64,000 bases of DNA from assembly GCA_943704425.1 (NCBI GenBank), contig CALSCP010002759.1, positions 57,217-121,216 on the forward strand. Direction: 5' to 3'. Position numbers and translations under genes: made by a program. Below the pieces are notes generated by a model. The model searched no databases. It saw only the letters and a list, made by a program, of their open reading frames with translations, and was not told the DNA's origin. The stretch comes from Ministeria vibrans ATCC 50519 (lineage: Eukaryota > Protista > Filasterea). Positions 104-60,411 of this stretch are shown piece after piece (position 1 is the first letter of the stretch; every line of letters begins with the position of its first letter).

Positions 104-5955
<5,852 letters not shown>

Positions 5956-6155
5956 GCCGCTATTCCTACTATCATTATTTTGTTCTTCCGAGTGACAGAC
6001 AGAGAGAGTGAGTGTCTTTCCTTCTTTTTACAATACAAACACCGTTTCCCGATAATAATATTCTCATATCTCTTGGAGCATTTCTTTTTTATTATAATTA
6101 TATACATCGTTCAAGTTGAAAGAAGAGAAAAGAGAGTGACCTCTAAACCACCATA

Positions 6156-9100
6156 TCAAAAAGCCATTGGTGCTGAAGAATAAACAACTCCACGAGTGCG
6201 CCCTAAATGCAAAAAAAAATAGGGTAAGCTCAACGTCACTCGAACTCAGACACATGCATACTCGGGCACTCGGCACCCAGACACTTGAGTCTCCTCTTCA
6301 CTCAACTCTCCATACACTCGCTCACTCAAACACACATCACAAGCTTTACACATGTCACACCCAATCACTCAGTCACCCACTGACACGCGACGTGTTGTGT
6401 ACCTGAAAGTTCATGTTAACCATCATTTCAGGTGTTTCGTTTTCGGCTCTCATGAGCGTCGGACCAAACACAATCGCAAGATTGCTCGCAGCCATTTTGT
6501 TTTCTTCACACATCTCGCTCACACTAAACAGTGAGCGTCAGTCAGTCCCACTCATTCCTCCTTTTTCGTCCTCTCATGCTCCAGATCTATCGCTCTAGTT
6601 TATCTGAGACTCTTACCGGTACAAGTGGAGTGCGAGGTGTTGGAGCACACGCACGTTGACCATTGGCATTCGTGAAATGGTTGCTTTAATAGCAATGAGT
6701 CGGTCGTCGTATTTGGGAAGTTCTACAGAGCGGCACTGTCAATACACACACACACACACACAAACAGAAGTTTTATCGTACTGATTGCTATCATGAAATC
6801 AGCAAAAAACTCAAAGGGAATGAGCGGATTGGGGAGTTCGCGAAAGTACAATTTGAGTGCGCCAGTGATGCTGTTGATGTCAGAGTATTCGGGAGCAGAG
6901 AAGTCGGTTGGGATGTCTACAGGCATGACAGTTAGAAGAGTCTCTATCACATTATTTATATGTTGAATCTCTCTATACGTAATATCTTTTTCTCCTTTCT
7001 CTCTCTCTCCTTATTTCTCCTCTCTCTCTCTATTATTTAGTTGTTTTCTCCTCTCTCTCTATTATTCTGTTCCTTCAAACTCTCTCAAACTCTCAAACTC
7101 TCTTGAATACCGTGATCCCAATTGTAGCGAATCTTTTGAATGAGGGAAGAAGAGCCTGACAGTCGGTAGATACCCACAACATGAGTGCCTCTGAGATCAA
7201 CCTGCTCAATGCACGCCGTAATGAAGTGAGGCACAGGGACTCCATTGCGCTCCACAAGGGCCTCGAGTGAGCCCCCGAAGACAGTTTCTTGCAAAATGCC
7301 CGCTGACTTGAGTGTCTCCGCATCCACTCGTTCGTCCAGCAGCTTCTTCAGACGCTTCTTCACTTTTTTCTTCTTCTCTTCGCCGGCCGCATCGTCAAAG
7401 TCGGGATCGTTCACCGCCGTCTTCTGGATCTTCTTCAACTCCTTCTTGCGCTGCTTCTCTTCCTCCTTCATCTGTTTCTTGCTCAGCTCCGCTGTTGGGC
7501 CTCCTCCAACGCCACCGGTCGCCAAGGCACCACCAGAGGGGGCCGTGGCACCACCATTCCCGCTTGCCCCTGTCGCAGTTGCTCCGCCTGTGGCGCCACT
7601 CTGAAGAGACGTGGACGCAGCAAGGGCCGCGTCAAAGTCCGAGGGTGTCGTGTTGCTATTGGAGCTCATGGTGGACGTGGGACGCGAGGCGCCGCGCACC
7701 GACGCCCACGAGGCACCTACGTCGTACGGATTGGACAGTGCCGCAATGGCCATGTGCCACTCGAAGAGCTGCTCGCTGTTTTCGCACTGCAAGAGAAACT
7801 CGGTGCCATTCGACGTTTTGGAAGACAGCACATATTTGCGCTTATGGTCCGCCACAATGTCCACTGACGAGGCGGTCATGACAAACGACGAGAGAGGACG
7901 CCCATTGCTCGCCGATGCACGCTGGTCCTTGAAGAAATTCAACTCTTCGCCACGCAACGTCGCATACATTGAGGTCCAGTTGCGCGACGGTTTCTTCGAG
8001 CCGTCCGCAATAATCTTACGCACAACAGTACCCTCAAGCGTGCGGGATGGAGACGTCTCAGACATGGCAATGGACGAGGTGGCAAACGCGCCGGTGCTCA
8101 GCGCTTGTTGGGCCCCAAGCGCACGGTTGGGAGGTACCTGGAGGCGACGCTGTGACACCTGCGGCTGCGATTGTTGTTGTTGAAGCTGTTGTTGTTGTTG
8201 TTGTTGTTGTTGTTGAAGCGGTTGTTGTTGAGGCTGTTGTTGTGCTTGTGGCGCTTGCTTCTGCGGTTGAGGCTTGAGTGAAGGATGCACCCATGAAGTT
8301 TCGCGCGTGATGGAGTTGTAGTAGTAGACACGACCACGCGGATCGCGAGCCTCGCGCCAGGCAGCGTCGATCGGAGGCGGTGCTGCAGCAGCTGAGGCTG
8401 CGGACGAAGTAAGGGTGACGGCAGGTGCTGGAGTGACAGGAAGTGTGGGGGTGATGGACTGCTGTTGCAGAGAGGGAGTCGACGTGGCCGGAGGGGTGGG
8501 TGTGACGCTGGGCGAAGGGGCATCGAGTTCGGGGGGACGGTCCCATGTGGTCACGTTGGTCGTCGAGTTGTGGTAGTACACTTTGCCCTTGTCATTAACA
8601 TGTTCGCTCCAAACAGATCGCACCTCTGCTGCCGGGGAATTTGCTGTCGTTGCTGTTGGTTCTGTGTCACTTGCGGTTGTCGTATCCGCGCTCGTGTCCG
8701 TTGTTGGAACATCTTCAGCACTCGTAGACGTGTCGGGCTTGCGAGGACGTGGGGCGCCAAGTCCACCTCCGGCGGCGAGTATGTCGGCGAGTCCCGAAGG
8801 TGCACGGACAGACTTGGAGGGGGGAGGTGACTTGAGAGACGCAGAGGAGTCAATAGTGGCACCGTGCACAAGAGGCTTGCGGGCACGATGGCTTGGCGCA
8901 GCTGCATCGGATGTCTTGGTATCATCCGAGGGCACTTCAGTCGCGTCGGTGACGGTCAAGTCTGTTTCTGTCGCGTCAGCCTCCGTCGCTGCTTCAGAGT
9001 CGACTTGCGTCTGTGTCGCTTCGTCTTCGTTCAAGAGCGTTTCTGCCTCGAGATCGCGGTACGCCTTGGCACCGGGACGACGATGTGGCAAGGTTCTATT

Positions 9101-10992: not shown

Positions 10993-11598
10993 NNNNNNNN
11001 NNNNNNNNNNNNNNNNNNNNNNNNNNNNNNNNNNNNNNNNNNNNNNNNNNNNNNNNNNNNNNNNNNNNNNNNNNNNNNNNNNNNNNNNNNNNNNNNNNNN
11101 NNNNNNNNNNNNNNNNNNNNNNNNNNNNNNNNNNNNNNNNNNNNNNNNNNNNNNNNNNNNNNNNNNNNNNNNNNNNNNNNNNNNNNNNNNNNNNNNNNNN
11201 NNNNNNNNNNNNNNNNNNNNNNNNNNNNNNNNNNNNNNNNNNNNNNNNNNNNNNNNNNNNNNNNNNNNNNNNNNNNNNNNNNNNNNNNNNNNNNNNNNNN
11301 NNNNNNNNNNNNNNNNNNNNNNNNNNNNNNNNNNNNNNNNNNNNNNNNNNNNNNNNNNNNNNNNNNNNNNNNNNNNNNNNNNNNNNNNNNNNNNNNNNNN
11401 NNNNNNNNNNNNNNNNNNNNNNNNNNNNNNNNNNNNNNNNNNNNNNNNNNNNNNNNNNNNNNNNNNNNNNNNNNNNNNNNNNNNNNNNNNNNNNNNNNNN
11501 NNNNNNNNNNNNNNNNNNNNNNNNNNNNNNNNNNNNNNNNNNNNNNNNNNNNNNNNNNNNNNNNNNNNNNNNNNNNNNNNNNNNNNNNNNNNNNNNNN
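10993..11598. other. Assembly gap (N run), probably hiding the 5' exons of both flanking divergent genes
   Basis: 606 N; both neighbouring genes lack their start. Confidence 0.95.
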
Positions 11599-33081: not shown

Positions 33082-34035
33082 ATGCATATCAAACAGATCA
33101 TCATCGACGGGTTCAAGTCGTATGCTAAGCGTACCGTCATCAGCGGCTTCGACGAACACTTCAACGCGATTACTGGTAAAAAAAAAAAAAAAAAAAAAAT
33201 TCAAAAACACACTACATCCCCTCGTCCAAGTCTTTCCCCTCTCTGTTTGACCCTTGACGCAGCACCATTGTGTTTAAACCTCTATATGAGCTCCTGTACA
33301 ACTTGCTCTACCGCAATACCGTCCGTTATTTGACTTGCAGGCGCAAATTGTCAAAATTGAAAAAATTCAAAAAACCCCCCAAAACATTTCAACCGCTCTC
33401 TCATTCACTTCAACGCTCTCCCTTTGCAAAGGTCTCAATGGGTCTGGAAAGTCAAACATCCTCGACGCCATTTGCTTTGTCCTGGGCATCTCGAATCTGT
33501 CTCAGGTACGACATTTGATGAGTTTTTGAAGAGCGCTCGATTTGAAAAAAAAAAAAATAACGAACTTTGAAATGTTTTAAAGGTGCGCGCGGGAAACCTG
33601 CAAGAGCTGGTGTACAAGCAGGGCCAGGCGGGTGTCACCAAGGCAACTGTGTCTATTGTCTTTGAGTATGTTGTTGTGTCTCGCAACGCAAAAATATGTT
33701 TTGATTTTTTTTCTTTTCTTTTCTTTTGTGTCTTGTTAGCAACATCGACAAGACAGGGAGCCCCGTCGGCTACGAGCACAACGACGAGATCACCGTGACG
33801 CGGCAGGTGGTCATTGGCGGGCGCAATAAGTATCTCATCAACGGACACAATGCACAATTGTCGCGCGTCCAAAACCTCTTCCACTCGGTCCAGCTCAACG
33901 TCAACAACCCCCACTTTCTCATCATGCAGGGTCGCATCACCAAGGGTAAGCGCACGACTAAAAAAAAAAAAAAAAGAACAGAAACCTCTTTTTGCATTGT
34001 AATAATGATTGTCACTCTCTATCATTTCTCTTCTT

Positions 34036-34089
<54 letters not shown>

Positions 34090-35555
34090 NNNNNNNNNCT
34101 TCCTCCTTTTCTATTTCTGCGTCTGGAAGTTACGGAATGGATAGTCTCACTTCCATGTCATTCCCCGCCCTCACTCAGACTTCCTCCTTTTCTATTTCTG
34201 CGTCTGGAGATAGGGGAATGTTTCGTCTCACTTCCATGTTATTCCCCGCCCTCACTCAGACTTCCTCCTTTTCTATTTCTGCGTCTGAAAATAACGGAAT
34301 GGAAGGTCTCACTTCCTTGTTATTCCCCGCCCTCACTCACACTTCGTCCTTTTCTATTTCTGCGTCTGGAACTAGCGGAATGGATAGTCTCACTTCCATG
34401 TCATTCCCCGCCCTCACTCACACTTCGTCCTTTTCTATTTCTGCGTCTGGATTTACGGGAATGGATAGTCTCACTTCCATGTCATTCCCCGCCCTCACTC
34501 ACACTTCCTCGTTTTCAATTTCTGCGTCTGGAGATAGGGGAATGGAAGGTCTCACTTCCATGTCATTCCCCGCCCTCACTCAGACTTCCTCCTTTTCAAT
34601 TTCTGCGCCTGGAAGTAGCGGAATGTATGGTCTCACTTCCATGTCATTCCCCACTCTCAATCATTCTTCCTCCTTTTCTATTTCTGCGTCTGGACATCAA
34701 GGAATGAATCGCCTCACTTCCATGGCATTCCCCGCCCTCACTCAGACTTCCTCCTTTTCTATTTCTGCGTCTGGAGATAGGGGAATGGAAGGTCTCACTT
34801 CCATGTCATTCCCCGCCCTCGCTCAGACTTCCTCCTTTTCAATTTCTGCATCTGACAGTGAGGGAATGGGTGATCTCACTTCCATGTCATTCCCCGCCCT
34901 CACTCAGACTTCCTCCTTCATCATATCAGGTGGTTCGGCCAGTTCTTTTACACAGTTCTCTTTACTCTCTTCGTTCAACAACCTCACTCATGTGACTGAC
35001 AGTGAACTGCGACTCACTCTCATTTCATCTCTGACATCCATTTCCGGTTTTGCCTCACTCTCGCGAGTCCACTCTCTGCGACTGGACACCCTTGCTGCTC
35101 TGACCAGTGTCCAAGGATTCAACAACCTTCAAACAATCGACACCACCCTCAAAATTGAGAACACAGGGCTCGTCTCCGCCGACTTCCTCTCCACTGTGAC
35201 ATCCATTGGCACAACAACCTCTGTGACTGGCAATTCGCGCTTGGCGCTCTGTCAGTCGCTACAGTCGAGTATACAGGCTGCCACAGCCGGGACGACCACC
35301 ATCTCGGGGTACGGGTCTCTCGAGCTTTGCTAGAGAGAAGCGGAATTATCACTCAACGAATAATAAAAAATATTATAATTATTGATAATCTTAAAAATAA
35401 TTATAATAATAATAATACCAAAAATAAAAAGAATAACAATAATAATACCAAAAATAAAAAGAATAATAATAATAATAATACCAAAAATAAAAAGAATAAA
35501 AAGAATAATAATAATAATACCAAAATAAAAAAAATAAAAAGAATAATAATAATAC

Positions 35556-35615
<60 letters not shown>

Positions 35616-37397
35616 TAATAATAACAGGGAACAAAATAGGAAAAAAAATGCCACTGAAAATGAGCTTGACAGGAACATTTAGTGGCGCTTACTCTGTACA
35701 TGTGAATATTCACGCAAGATACTATTAAGGACTCACCCAGCGCAGACCAGGTGAGCAGAATGTTCATAATATAACGCACACCGCTGCCGCTCGCTTTCCT
35801 TCTCTCGCACGGATCTCGCTCTCCTTATCTTCTTCTTTTCCACTCATTCCCCAGCATTAATATTGCACTGAAGTTGGCCCTAGTTATCACTCTTAAGCTT
35901 GTCCAATAATTAATATAATTATTTTATAAGCCAAAAATTCCTACTAGACTTGATCGATCATTCAATCTATCTACCGACCTACCTACGGTAGTTTCTATTA
36001 TTAAAAAATATTAATGATAAAAAATAACAATAATCATAATGATTAATTTTAATATTTTGGCTGAGTGATCGTGACAATAAATGATTGTTGTACAGAATTC
36101 AAACAGTGTGACTCGAATGAAACTCGGAGATGGAGGAGAGTCGTTGGATGACACCCGACAGAGAATGCGACGTAGCAGTGTCAATAAGCGTATCGACAAA
36201 ATCGCCTACAAAGAAGGGAGAGTAAGGGCGTGATGGATTGGAATTGGGAAGATGGGCGAACCTTCTTTCATCGGAATGAGATTGTGTGGATCCGCTTTGA
36301 CAATGACACGCATGTTACTATCAGAACGACCCACAAACGCATTGGGAGTGCGACGCGACGGCTGAAAATGTGCCACAAGGAAGATAGGGTTCATTAGGGT
36401 TAAGGGGCTACGCAAATTGTGTGTTTAAATTACCTTTTCGAGTAAAATGAGTTGACGAGTGCCTAACATCGCTCTGTTTAGTTCCAATGCTGTCTCAGTG
36501 TGCGTGGCAACCACTTCTTTCAGTCGTCGATTTTTCTCTTCTGCACTCACAGAGTCAGTCTAAAAGTATTGACGTGTCCATACAAAGTCAGTGTGAGTGA
36601 GAGATATCCAAACTGTTTTGATAAAAAAACGCAACAGAGAGCGATATAGCTCCTCCAGTAAAATATATAATTATGTTATAATTAATTAATTATGTAAGCC
36701 CTAACCCTAACCCTAATGACACGATGGCAATCCTAACACTAATGACAAGTTTTTACCAGTTTGCGGTGCGCATTTGTCTTTTCTCGCATTGAATAAGCAA
36801 ACATAAATGCCTGATTGAATCTCACTCGTCGCATCAGTGAAATTGTCTCCAAATGATCACCCTCCGTCTCGCCACAAAATCCTGATATAAAATCAGACGA
36901 AATCGAAACACCTACAAAGCACACAATAAGAAAAATAAAAGAAGAGAAACAGACTAGAAGGGCTGACCGGGAATCATTTCGCGAATATGATCCACTAGTT
37001 CAAGATAAGCGTCGCGGGAATACCTAAAAGGGGAAACGATGAGCGACATAATTCTTGTGTGAGTGAATGTGAGGTCGAAGAATAAATAAAAAGAGTTGGT
37101 CACTGAAGTAATGGAGTGAGTGTGTATGTGTGTGTATACCCTCTTCGCATTGATTTGAGCACTGCACTTGAGCCACTCTGCGCGGGCATATGAATCTGAT
37201 TGCACACATTGGGATAATCACTACAGACAACACCATACGCACACAATCGATCAATCATCCGACCCAATCACTCTCGCTGCCGGGCAGTCACCCTCTTTCA
37301 CTCAATCTCTCAATAGCACTCTCAGTCCACCCACTGTAACCCTCTCTCTATCACTTTGTTTCTTTCTCCCTCCTTTCTTTCTCTCCCCCTCTCTCCC

Positions 37398-37493
<96 letters not shown>

Positions 37494-40400
37494 TTTTGAC
37501 GTATTTAGTCCTCAACATGAAGCCTCCGGAGATTCTTGCGCTGATTGAGGAGGCAGCGGGCACGCGGATGTTTGAGACGAAGAAGGCTAGCGCACAGAAG
37601 ACGATTGAAAAGAAGGAAAAGAAGATTGACGAGATCAACGCGATTTTGAACGAGGAGATTACGCCAACACTGGAGAAGCTGCGGGGCGAGCGCAGCAACT
37701 ACCTCGAGTATCAGAATGGACAGCGCGAGATGGATCTGTTGATGCGCTTCTGCACCGCCTACGACTATATGACGAGCCAGCGACTGCTGACGGGTGGCAC
37801 ACAGGAGCTCGACGAGCTGCACTCGCAAATGGCCGAGCTTAAGTCTCGCGCGCGCAAGATTGACGCTGAGATTATCAATCTGGGGCAGAACGCGACCATT
37901 CTGGAGCGCAAGCGTGACACCGAGGCTGGCGGGAAGCTGACGGATCTGGAGAAAAAGGCGAACGTGTCGAGTCAGGAGCTGGTCAAGACGACAACGGAGC
38001 ACCAGCACCAGACGGAGGCGGTGCAAACAGAGCGGGCAAATCTGGCGTCGCTGCTCAAGACACGCGACGAGACGATCGCTGCCATTGCCGACAAGGAGCG
38101 CGAGCTGGCGGCTGCCGAGGTAGAGCTTGCGGCAGTGCAGACAGCGCATGGCGATGTGGTGTCGCAGCACGAGCAGCTCAAGCGTCAGGTACATGGCTTC
38201 TCGCTCGCCTCCAACGATGGAGGCGTCAAGACACAGACAGACGAGCTTATGGACGCCAAGAAGCAAGCGGGCGAGGCGGCCACCGAGGCCCAGCAGGCGA
38301 CTATGAAGATCAAACACGTCGAGGCAGAGCTGGCGGCCAAGCGCAAGGCAGCCAAGGCAACGGCAGGCGAGTACAGCACTACCAAGGCACGTCTCGAGGC
38401 GCAGCAGAGCGAGGCAATGGCCCTCCTAGCCGAGCTTGAGGCCATTCAGTACGACGGAAAAGCCGAGGCGGCCCTCACCAAGCAGACACTTGAAGAGCAC
38501 AAGCGCGTGGCGTCTCTGCGCGAGAAGGTAGATCAGATGGCAGCACAACTGCAGGCACTGGACTTCCAGTACGACAGTCCCTCTGCCAGCTTTGACCATG
38601 GTCGCGTCAAGGGACTCGTCGCACAGCTGATTGACGTGGCCGACACGCGCTATGCGACAGCACTGGAGGTTACGGCCGGCTCGCGTTTGTACAATGTGGT
38701 GGTGGACACCGAGGGCACCGGCAAGGCGCTGCTCGAGAAGGGCAATCTGAAGCGTCGCGTCACCATCATCCCGTTGAACAAGATTAGCGCACAGTCGCTC
38801 AACGAGTCGACTGTGGCCAACGCACAGCGCATGTGTGGCGCAGCCAATGTGCAGCAGGCTCTTTCGCTCGTGGGCTACGACGACCAGCTCGAGGCCGCAA
38901 TGAAGTATGTCTTTGGCACGACACTTGTGTGCGAGACACTCGACATTGCCAAGAAGGTGACCTTTGACAAGTCCATCAAGACGCGCTCGGTGACACTCGA
39001 CGGCGACACCTTTGACCCGTCGGGCACGCTCACGGGCGGTGCGCGTTCGCAGCAGCAGCCCGTGCTGTCACGTCTGCAGGAGCTGCGCGACGCACGCACT
39101 GAGCTTGCCGAGCGCAACAGTGCTCTCAAGGAGCTCGATGTGAGTCTGACCAAGATGCGCGAGGCGGCCAAGAGACGCGCGACGCTCGAGAAGAAGCACG
39201 AGTTGCTGGAGCATAGCAACGCGCTGTTTGCCGAGCGTGTGCAGTCGAGCCCGCACTTTCGTCAGATGGAGGAGCTCGATACGCTTGCGGCCTCCATTGA
39301 GACGCTCAAAACGGCCGTCGACGTGGCAAAGCAACAGGAGAAGCAGCTCAAGGAGCGCGTGAAGCGCATCGAGGACGACATGAAGCACGGCCAGGCGAAG
39401 AAGAAGGACGAACTGAAGAAGCTGCAGACCGCACTGGCAGCGGCTAAAAAGGCACTGACGCTGTCGCAGAAGCAGCACCAGGAGGCCGAGACGCATGTTG
39501 AGAGCCTGCGTCTCGAGCTGGCCGAGCTGCACAACGAGGTCAAGGCGCTTGGGGAGCAGGCGACTGCGTCGGAGGCGGCCATTGCCAAGCTGGTGAATGA
39601 CGTGGACAAGGCGGAGCGTGCGCGCGAGATGGCCGCGCAGCGTTACGATGAGGCCAAGGACGCACTGGACGAGGTCAAGGCAAAGCTGGCGGCGGCCAAC
39701 GATGAGATTGGCGGTCTGCGTGCGCAGTGCGAGGCGCTCGCAACGGAGAAGACAGACGGGGCGCTGCAGCTGAAGAAGAAGGAGCATGCGCTGCAGAAAC
39801 TGACGGTAGAGACCAAGGAGGCAGGCAAGCAGGTGGACGCACTGGCATCGCGCAACCCGTGGATCGCACAGGAGCAGGTGCACTTTGGCAAGGTCAACAC
39901 CGACTATGACTTTAGCAAGAAGAACCCAGCCGAGTGCCGCCGCAAGCTCAACAAGCTGCGCGACAACCAGAGCGAGCTGGCCAAGGGTATCAACATGAAG
40001 GTGATGAACATGTTTGGCAAGGCCGAGCAGGAGTACACGGATCTCCTGAAGAAGAAGACCATTGTTGAGCAGGACAAGGAGAAGATTGGAAAGGTGAAAA
40101 AAAAATAACACAAATATATAATTAATAATCTTTTTAATGGCATGATGAGAACAAAGAATCTAAACTGTGCGTTTTTTATATATATCATAGGCCATTGACG
40201 ATCTGGATGAAAAGAAGAACGAGGCGTTGCGCAAGACGTATGTGCAGGTGAACCGTGACTTTGGCAGCATCTTCTCAACGTTGCTGCCGGGTGCGAACGC
40301 TAAGCTGTCGCCGCCCGAGGGAGGCACTGTGCTCGATGGACTGTGTGTGCGTGTGGCGTTTGGAGATTCGTGGAAGGAGTCGCTAACTGAGCTGAGTGGA

Positions 40401-59861: not shown

Positions 59862-60411
59862 ATGTCCGAAAAACAGCCACCGTCGGGCGGCAGTGCCTCC
59901 GCATCCCCGACCCTCTTGCTGGCCGGCACATATCCGATTCTCTCCAGCAACTCGGCGAGTGCGGCGGCCCCTGGCGAAGTGGGCGTCGCCACGAGTCAAC
60001 CAACTGCCGTTGAGGTGCCGTCACACTCCACGCCAATGTCGCCGCCCAACGCCCCGTACAGCGCTGCTCACTACATGGGCGAGCTGTCCCATGAGCAATA
60101 CGCGGCGCAATGGCCTTCCGTGCACTCGCCCAATCCGGAGGAACTGAGCAACACCAACATCTACATTCGCGGCTTGCGACCCACCACCACCGATGAGGCG
60201 CTCAAAGAGATGTGCTCAAGGTATCCGCATCGCCTTACCAAGCCAGCCATTGGATAACTCTTGTTTGTTTGTGTGTGTGTGTTTCTCTCTCTCTCTCTAT
60301 CACTTTGTTTCTCTCTCTCTCTCTCTATCACTTTGTTTCTCTCTCTCTCTATCACTTTGTTTCTCTCTCTCTCTCTATCACTTTGTTTCTCTCTCTCTCT
60401 ATNNNNNNNNN

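Follow-up and report, generated by a model that had tools for sequence, protein, structure and literature searches.

The locus

The window analysed here is a stretch of 64,000 nucleotides from the filasterean protist Ministeria vibrans ATCC 50519 (GenBank assembly GCA_943704425.1, contig CALSCP010002759.1, positions 57,217 to 121,216 of the forward strand), and positions without a contig name are counted from its first letter. Its DNA is eukaryotic, with spliced genes and introns rich in microsatellites. One exon in the window encodes part of SMC2, with 44% identity to the SMC2 of Capsaspora owczarzaki and 38-43% to animal SMC2, and no database entry is near-identical to it; it ends at 33946 in GG before the donor gtaagc, and the next SMC2 exon starts at about 37503 after tttag. 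Between the two lies a 3.2-kb block (34099-37341) that holds part of a repeat gene and part of a CDK5RAP1/MiaB-like gene, and both of its junctions run through (CT)n (Table 1). Further assembly gaps occur elsewhere in the window, at 10993-11598 (606 N) and 60403-60411 (9 N).

Table 1. Features of the block and its edges, followed by family members elsewhere in the assembly
Feature	Location	Strand	Remarks
(CT)n of the true SMC2 intron	34015-34089	.	left edge of the chimeric insert
9-N scaffold gap	34090-34098	.	cuts the gene within its array
Ten 81-bp (27-aa) solenoid units	34101-34910	+	in-frame units cut at 34101
Hypervariable bases per 81-bp unit	each of the ten units	+	25-33 (codons 9-11), 40-45 (codons 14-15)
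C-terminal cap	34911-35333	+	degenerate turns, Receptor-L-like; two conserved Cys including the last residue
TAG stop of the repeat ORF	35331-35333	+	
(AAT)n microsatellite	35359-35624	.	about 89 copies, directly 3' of the repeat-gene stop
3' exons of CDK5RAP1/MiaB-like gene	36206-37220	-	convergent with the repeat gene
(CT)n of the wrong join to the next SMC2 exon	37342-37489	.	(GA)n intron of CDK5RAP1 on the other strand
5' half only	C1706		2410 bp
Paralog B	C2362		699 aa, complete ORF, array uninterrupted
Paralog C	C2362		751 aa, head to head with B
Copy lacking its array	C1339		whole array replaced by a 140-N gap
Paralog E	C1656		895-aa open frame, about 15 diverged turns
Paralog F	C408		
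Weak match	C1494		
Relic	C2427:2156-2389		last ~78 codons only, without upstream family sequence

The repeat array and its variable codons

Tandem Repeats Finder detects 10.1 copies of an 81-bp unit at 34099-34918 (score 1163), as well as a super-period of 243 bp (score 1295). An earlier note, made from the sequence alone, had described ten near-identical units with two variable blocks, and all of the residues that it listed were recovered exactly (GSY/DS, GDR/FR, ENN/EG, GTS/DS, GFT/DS, GDR/EG, GSS/YG, GHQ/NR, GDR/EG and DSE/GD), along with the pairings of the blocks (DR with FR or EG; DS with SY, TS or FT) and the NNT form of codon 10, present in 10 of the 10 window units. Codons 12 and 13 (GGA ATG), lying between the two blocks, are invariant in all units. 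Mean pairwise nucleotide identity among the ten units is 94.3% in the framework of 22 codons and 58.4% in the five variable codons, and whole units share an average of 77.7% of their amino acids (pairwise range 63-96%) over 270 aa. Changes are limited to 15 of the 81 bases in each unit, and the substitutions in the variable codons involve all four bases. At codons 10, 14 and 15, third positions stay T while positions 1-2 change, and NNT was found there in 43 of 48 cases when the window gene and paralog B were taken together. A ten-unit pattern with its variable codons so confined is far beyond chance; the number and order of units are minimum estimates here and below, the short-read assembly having broken or left a gap in every highly conserved array.

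The gene family and the 5' half of the gene

Whether the array stands alone or belongs to a family was a question raised by the earlier note, and the answer is a multi-locus family. Within the 29.7-Mb assembly, the DNA of the array matches four loci only, all of them family genes or gene halves, and a six-frame protein search of the assembly uncovered further members, bringing the family to about seven members and one relic. Gene birth and death left the partial copy on C2427 behind as a relic. The copy on C1339 is closer to the window gene than any other paralog (cap dS 0.12; flanks 92% identical in amino acids), and its last visible unit (..N GM YG) has a loop unlike that of the window's last unit. 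Adjoining paralog C (C2362:35000-44999, local positions 3060-6770 and 1318-1968, both on the minus strand) are two ORFs of animal-type signalling: the larger, of 1237 aa, is adhesion-GPCR-like, with five EGF domains and a secretin-family 7TM domain (7tm_2), and the other is tyrosine-kinase-like. The earlier note had also allowed for assignment of the contig to a contaminant. This was rejected: family members are spread over at least seven contigs, the block splices to CDK5RAP1 with the same microsatellite-rich introns, and the genes beside the paralogs are of holozoan type.

The 5' end of the gene, given as missing in the earlier note, lies on C1706. The last 93 nt of this contig, which holds only the 5' half of a family gene, are identical to window 34099-34191; C1706 ends in two GSY/DS units, and the window begins with one. 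As the genome contains no other orphan halves, the simplest view is that C1706 and the window fragment make up a single gene of at least 11 units; the two were analysed as separate pieces in all searches and folds. The C1706 product starts with a short hydrophobic stretch, MVVIFPFTATA, which is very short as a signal peptide; paralog B has a canonical signal peptide. Thrombospondin type-1 (TSP1) domains were identified on C1706 in two stretches, with 86.1 bits for TSP1_spondin (PF19028; gathering score 41) and 48.9 bits for TSP_1 (PF00090; gathering score 21.6). They occur above the Pfam gathering score in paralogs B, C, E and F as well, and the window fragment itself has none. C1706 also encodes the first L-domain/solenoid turns and a probable coiled coil, in keeping with the N-terminal helix of paralog B (residues 56-100) and weak matches to coiled-coil families. 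Beyond the cap there is neither a transmembrane nor a GPI-type tail, and all family members end in a conserved Cys.

From these pieces, the window sequence at 34101-35333 would be the 3' part, or about the back two-thirds, of a gene without introns whose product is secreted and at least ~760 residues long. In the predicted protein, a short signal peptide is followed by the probable coiled coil, then by two TSP1 domains and lastly by a long Receptor-L / LRR_5-type solenoid, of which at least 11 central turns would be recently amplified 27-residue units.

Fold and position of the variable loop

The window fragment was modelled with AF2 using five paralog rows, and the predicted structure (pLDDT 89.3, pTM 0.84) is a regular, strictly 27-periodic solenoid. 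Each unit of the model consists of a ten-residue strand (positions 26-27 and 1-8), a nine-residue loop (9-17) and a three-residue strand (18-20), and the variable residues sit in the loop, flanking an invariant G12-M13. In the model of full-length paralog B, a long N-terminal helix of low confidence (56-100) is followed by the TSP1 domains and by a confident solenoid spanning about 230-690.

Several comparisons bear out the earlier proposal of an L-domain- or LRR-like solenoid. Foldseek returned LRR proteins only, with the LRR_5 structures 4gt6, 4fs7 and 4h09 at E ~2e-3, and the best matches of VIA-align among 48,161 chains were InlJ (Z 18.8), the LRR of RPP1 (18.3) and LRIM1/APL1C (16.7), followed by beta-helix tailspikes. 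The cap (model residues 269-410) can be superposed on an L domain of rat HER2 with a Z of 11.1 and an rmsd of 2.6 Å over 122 residues. At the level of sequence, Pfam Recep_L (PF01030; gathering score 21.8 bits) is reached by paralogs C (24.7), E (52.7) and F (37.7 bits), and the window fragment (18.8) and paralog B (21.5) both fall just below it; PF13306 (LRR_5) gave no Pfam match in the window fragment or B at E values up to 1.

Residues T17, S18 and S20, which occupy the canonical concave face of an LRR, are invariant in the units, and the variable site is therefore not the classical LRR binding face. Judging from the strict 27-residue register and the position of the loop, the variable residues would instead share one exposed face, where the loops of stacked turns may form a single continuous ridge about 50 Å long beside invariant Ser/Thr ladders.

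Concerted evolution and the order of units

Comparison of the window gene with paralog B points to concerted evolution of the array. Between their framework consensus sequences there is one silent difference in 17.7 sites (dS 0.06), against a dS of 0.38 for the upstream flank (TSP1 and N-terminal L domain) and of 0.64 for the C-terminal cap (binomial p = 0.005 for array versus flank), which shows that the framework has been homogenised both within and between paralogs. The same process left the loop differences between paralogs in place. Homogenised arrays with sites that stay different are a regime already described for the repeats of fungal NLRs (PMC4986451). Unequal crossing-over or gene conversion, acting within the gene and between paralogs, would be the means by which the near-identity of units is kept.

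The earlier note went further and read the pairings of the two variable blocks as a sign of recombination between units. This is not required by the data. At the nucleotide level, 32 of the 66 informative site pairs are incompatible; at the level of the variable blocks there is no four-gamete violation among the window units, and a PHI-type permutation over the 81 bp was not significant (p = 0.92). The listed combinations can be explained by stepwise change, one block at a time. Recombination among units is thus unproven, and recurrent selected mutation and conversion are indistinguishable here.

A shuffled order of units, for its part, rests on a short-read assembly that broke in this very array, and it is conceivable, albeit unlikely, that the shuffling and part of the order and number of units are products of assembly, with short reads threaded arbitrarily and possibly drawn from paralogs too. 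The contig breaks exactly at two adjacent, identical GSY/DS units, the array of the C1339 copy is replaced by 140 N, and a (CT)n tract is the site of a demonstrable chimeric join in the window contig (see below). Against this, a unit carries its two blocks within a span of 21 bp, such that each pairing is spanned by single reads or k-mers, and private framework differences permit the units to be ordered. Moreover, the pattern recurs in paralog B, which is complete and has an unbroken ORF. Misassembly would consequently touch the order and count of the units and not the existence of hypervariable loops.

Excess of replacements at the loop codons

Selection on the loop was assessed by counting the minimum number of changes in each codon column, with the neutral expectation taken from the silent rate of the framework. 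In the window gene, replacement and silent changes number 21:1 in the variable codons and 10:7 in the framework (Fisher p = 0.013), and the 21 replacements compare with 4.8 expected (Poisson p = 5e-8). The six units of paralog B on C2362 gave 18:0 against 7:8 (Fisher p = 5e-4), or 18 replacements with 5.2 expected (Poisson p = 1e-5). Repeat units are not independent samples, however, and recombination can inflate such site-wise tests and confounds trees. Pairwise Nei-Gojobori estimates for the window gene are dN 0.74 and dS 0.22 in the variable codons (omega 3.3), compared with dN 0.049 and dS 0.090 in the framework (omega 0.54). When both paralogs were pooled, at most 1 of 40 changes in the variable codons was silent, versus about 20% expected (p = 0.0015), the silent counts in these codons being small. 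The dN/dS ratio at the variable codons, which the earlier note had proposed to compute, accordingly exceeds 1, with an excess of replacements in two paralogs. Codons 9-11 and 14-15 have taken replacements several times faster than the framework changes silently (about 3-4.3 times its silent rate), and only a few sites in each repeat are under positive diversifying selection. The arrays of paralogs C and E, which are older and diverged, also reach their maximum entropy at this loop, and the length of the loop differs among paralogs B, C and E.

That variation in loop length, together with a Ser/Thr-rich framework that could be a mere glycosylated spacer, would also suit a structural or adhesive matrix protein with recently duplicated turns, the loops of which vary by neutral drift and have no role in recognition. 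Such an explanation is distinctly unlikely, as drift cannot exceed the silent rate and the replacements do so by the factor just given, at 21:1 and 18:0 in two paralogs. Drift likewise fits poorly with the T kept at the third positions of codons 10, 14 and 15 while positions 1-2 change, and with a homogenisation that wiped out framework differences between paralogs but spared those in the loops.

Placement in the SMC2 intron

The position of the repeat gene within SMC2 is an artefact of assembly. The N-terminal UPF0004 domain of CDK5RAP1 lies at the very end of another contig, C2822 (C2822:71348-74112), which stops in (GA)n after CG and the donor gtaagg; the frame continues in the window, across the acceptor tgtag before T at 37220, into the expected MiaB/CDK5RAP1 motif. 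The CDK5RAP1 exons of C2822 and of the window were used as separate pieces and never joined. Because both missing 5' halves fit as contig ends, the true order is C2822, the block in reverse complement and then C1706. On the strength of these junctions, 34099-37341 is a chimeric insert in the SMC2 intron, and its location there an assembly error. The true intron is probably a few hundred bases long and carries (CT)n, in place of the 3.5 kb (33946-37503) seen in the scaffold.

Read literally, the scaffold would represent a genuine nested insertion of two truncated genes into an SMC2 intron, with the repeat ORF a dead, 5'-truncated pseudogene, and the right-hand junction does indeed lack an N gap. 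This is very improbable, given that both absent 5' halves exist as exactly fitting contig ends (the 93-nt overlap of C1706; the donor and frame of C2822) and that the rest of the block occurs only once in the genome. The block was also considered as a haplotig or duplicate of the C1339 locus, which was rejected, 35640-37341 having no second genome copy. CCCTAA-type interstitial repeats are found at 36699-36742, inside a CDK5RAP1 intron. In practical terms, the SMC2 model and the repeat-gene model both need correcting.

Proposed function

Taken together, it is reasonably probable that the locus represents a gene for a secreted protein with a coiled coil, TSP1 domains and a solenoid, that its loops form a fast-evolving binding ridge, and that its site in SMC2 is a chimera. 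The diversified binding ridge is the best-supported reading of the loops, as a candidate function only. The product would be a germline-encoded, fast-evolving extracellular binding protein, either an adhesin or a pattern-recognition-like molecule, which might oligomerise via the coiled coil and use its TSP1 domains as a second attachment module. The role suggested in the earlier note, that of a receptor for prey, pathogen or kin, is unproven. It is possible, if somewhat doubtful, that this small family of secreted proteins, with oligomerising coiled coils, TSP1 domains and amplified L-domain/LRR turns, provides a germline, rapidly re-assorting array for the recognition of bacteria, prey, pathogens or kin, akin to the repeat arrays of fungal NLRs but acting outside the cell, in which the gain, loss and exchange of units would make new specificities between strains.

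Targeted mutagenesis (DGR-like or deaminase-like) as the writer of loop diversity is hardly credible: the NNT design in 43 of 48 cases at codons 10, 14 and 15 would avoid stops, NNT never being one, and the changes are confined to 15 of 81 bases, but the surroundings contain neither a template copy nor an extra near-identical array (four array-DNA loci only), all four bases are substituted, and a conserved third position is also the look of young codons under positive selection. No mechanism of this kind is known in eukaryotes.

Comparison with known systems and relatives

Relatives of the family are distant. Word searches with paralog B returned TSP1-only matches or remote LRR_5/Recep_L proteins (best E = 1e-27, with 38% identity over 38% of the query), and none of these matches combined TSP1 with a solenoid. 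The distant relatives with PF13306 or PF01030 share the turn motif 'LTSxSFPxLT' (E down to 1e-27). A search of the PDB by sequence gave only LRIG1 (E = 0.013), and the ESM Atlas gave no usable match. Metagenome scans with protein patterns and a degenerate DNA pattern, which may leave out records near this genome, detected no relatives, and neither these scans nor the protein-database searches yielded another isolate or close relative. Three metagenomic proteins (P0009, P0012 and P0016) are distant and probably bacterial or phage; they are built of 'LTS(M/L)SFPALTT(I/V)GGxF' turns in which the residues separating F from the following LTS differ between turns, implying the same variable loop in remote LRR_5-like solenoids.

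In fold class, the solenoid resembles Receptor L (PF01030) and BspA-type LRR_5 (PF13306) proteins, with a single-stranded, right-handed beta-helix like that of the L domains of EGFR and the insulin receptor. It differs from these in that a 27-aa unit has been amplified to near identity and fused to two TSP1 domains and a coiled coil. Mosquito LRIM1/APL1C are likewise secreted and combine a signal peptide, an LRR solenoid and a coiled coil (Z 16.7 for 3oja_B and 16.0 for 4xgo_B), but their coiled coil is C-terminal rather than N-terminal, and they have neither TSP1 nor amplified, near-identical units; judging from the model, this resemblance is at the level of the fold only.

The variable lymphocyte receptors (VLRs) of lampreys and hagfish are also extracellular solenoids of LRR type, whose binding surface is made up of variable residues contributed by stacked modules. 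Diversity in VLRs is somatic, however, with flanking cassettes copied into an incomplete germline gene, whereas here a complete ORF is present in the germline (paralog B) and the array units occur at four loci only. Furthermore, the variable residues of VLRs lie on the concave strand, and those described here lie in the loop before the LRR strand. TAL effectors show a comparable logic, with near-identical tandem units, few adjacent variable residues and a register-stacked reading ridge, yet they are injected, DNA-binding bacterial effectors made of alpha-helical repeats of 33-35 aa, without any relation in sequence or fold. Targets of diversity-generating retroelements, which have a template repeat and a reverse transcriptase beside the variable region and show adenine-specific changes, differ in both respects already named, namely the absence here of a second array copy nearby and the changes in all four bases.

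The repeats of the HET-E/HET-D/NWD family of fungal NLRs are reportedly treated in work by Paoletti in 2007 and Dyrka in 2014, and they offer the closest parallel in mode of evolution. Near-identical tandem units with few hypervariable positions per repeat and an excess of replacements are common to both, as are homogenisation within and between paralogs and arrays that are hard to assemble. The fungal high-internal-conservation repeats are of the WD40, ANK and TPR types (PMC4986451) and are defined by at least 85% amino-acid identity over at least 100 aa (Dyrka 2014; PMC4986451), and the window array lies below this value, at 77.7% over 270 aa. Dyrka et al. reportedly found LRRs to be absent from fungal NLRs, and the repeats described here form an LRR/Receptor-L-type beta-solenoid in a holozoan-like protist, not a fungus. 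In addition, the protein is predicted to be secreted and has TSP1 domains, and the full-length paralogs gave only TSP1 and Recep_L-type domains in Pfam, with no NOD domain (NACHT or NB-ARC). In short, the array works like the fungal high-internal-conservation repeats without being a member of that class, as indicated by its fold, its lack of a NOD, its extracellular nature and its identity of 78%.

In fungi, bacteria and jawless vertebrates, recognition molecules (NLRs, TAL effectors and VLRs, respectively) are marked by arrays of near-identical repeats in which a few residues change fast. Here this evolutionary mode occurs in an extracellular solenoid of Receptor-L/LRR type that is fused to thrombospondin repeats. 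If the ridge is a binding site, the family would provide a tractable case of a single-celled lineage, close to the root of the animals, with a diversified system of recognition outside the cell, built from domains that were later used in animal receptors and matrix proteins.
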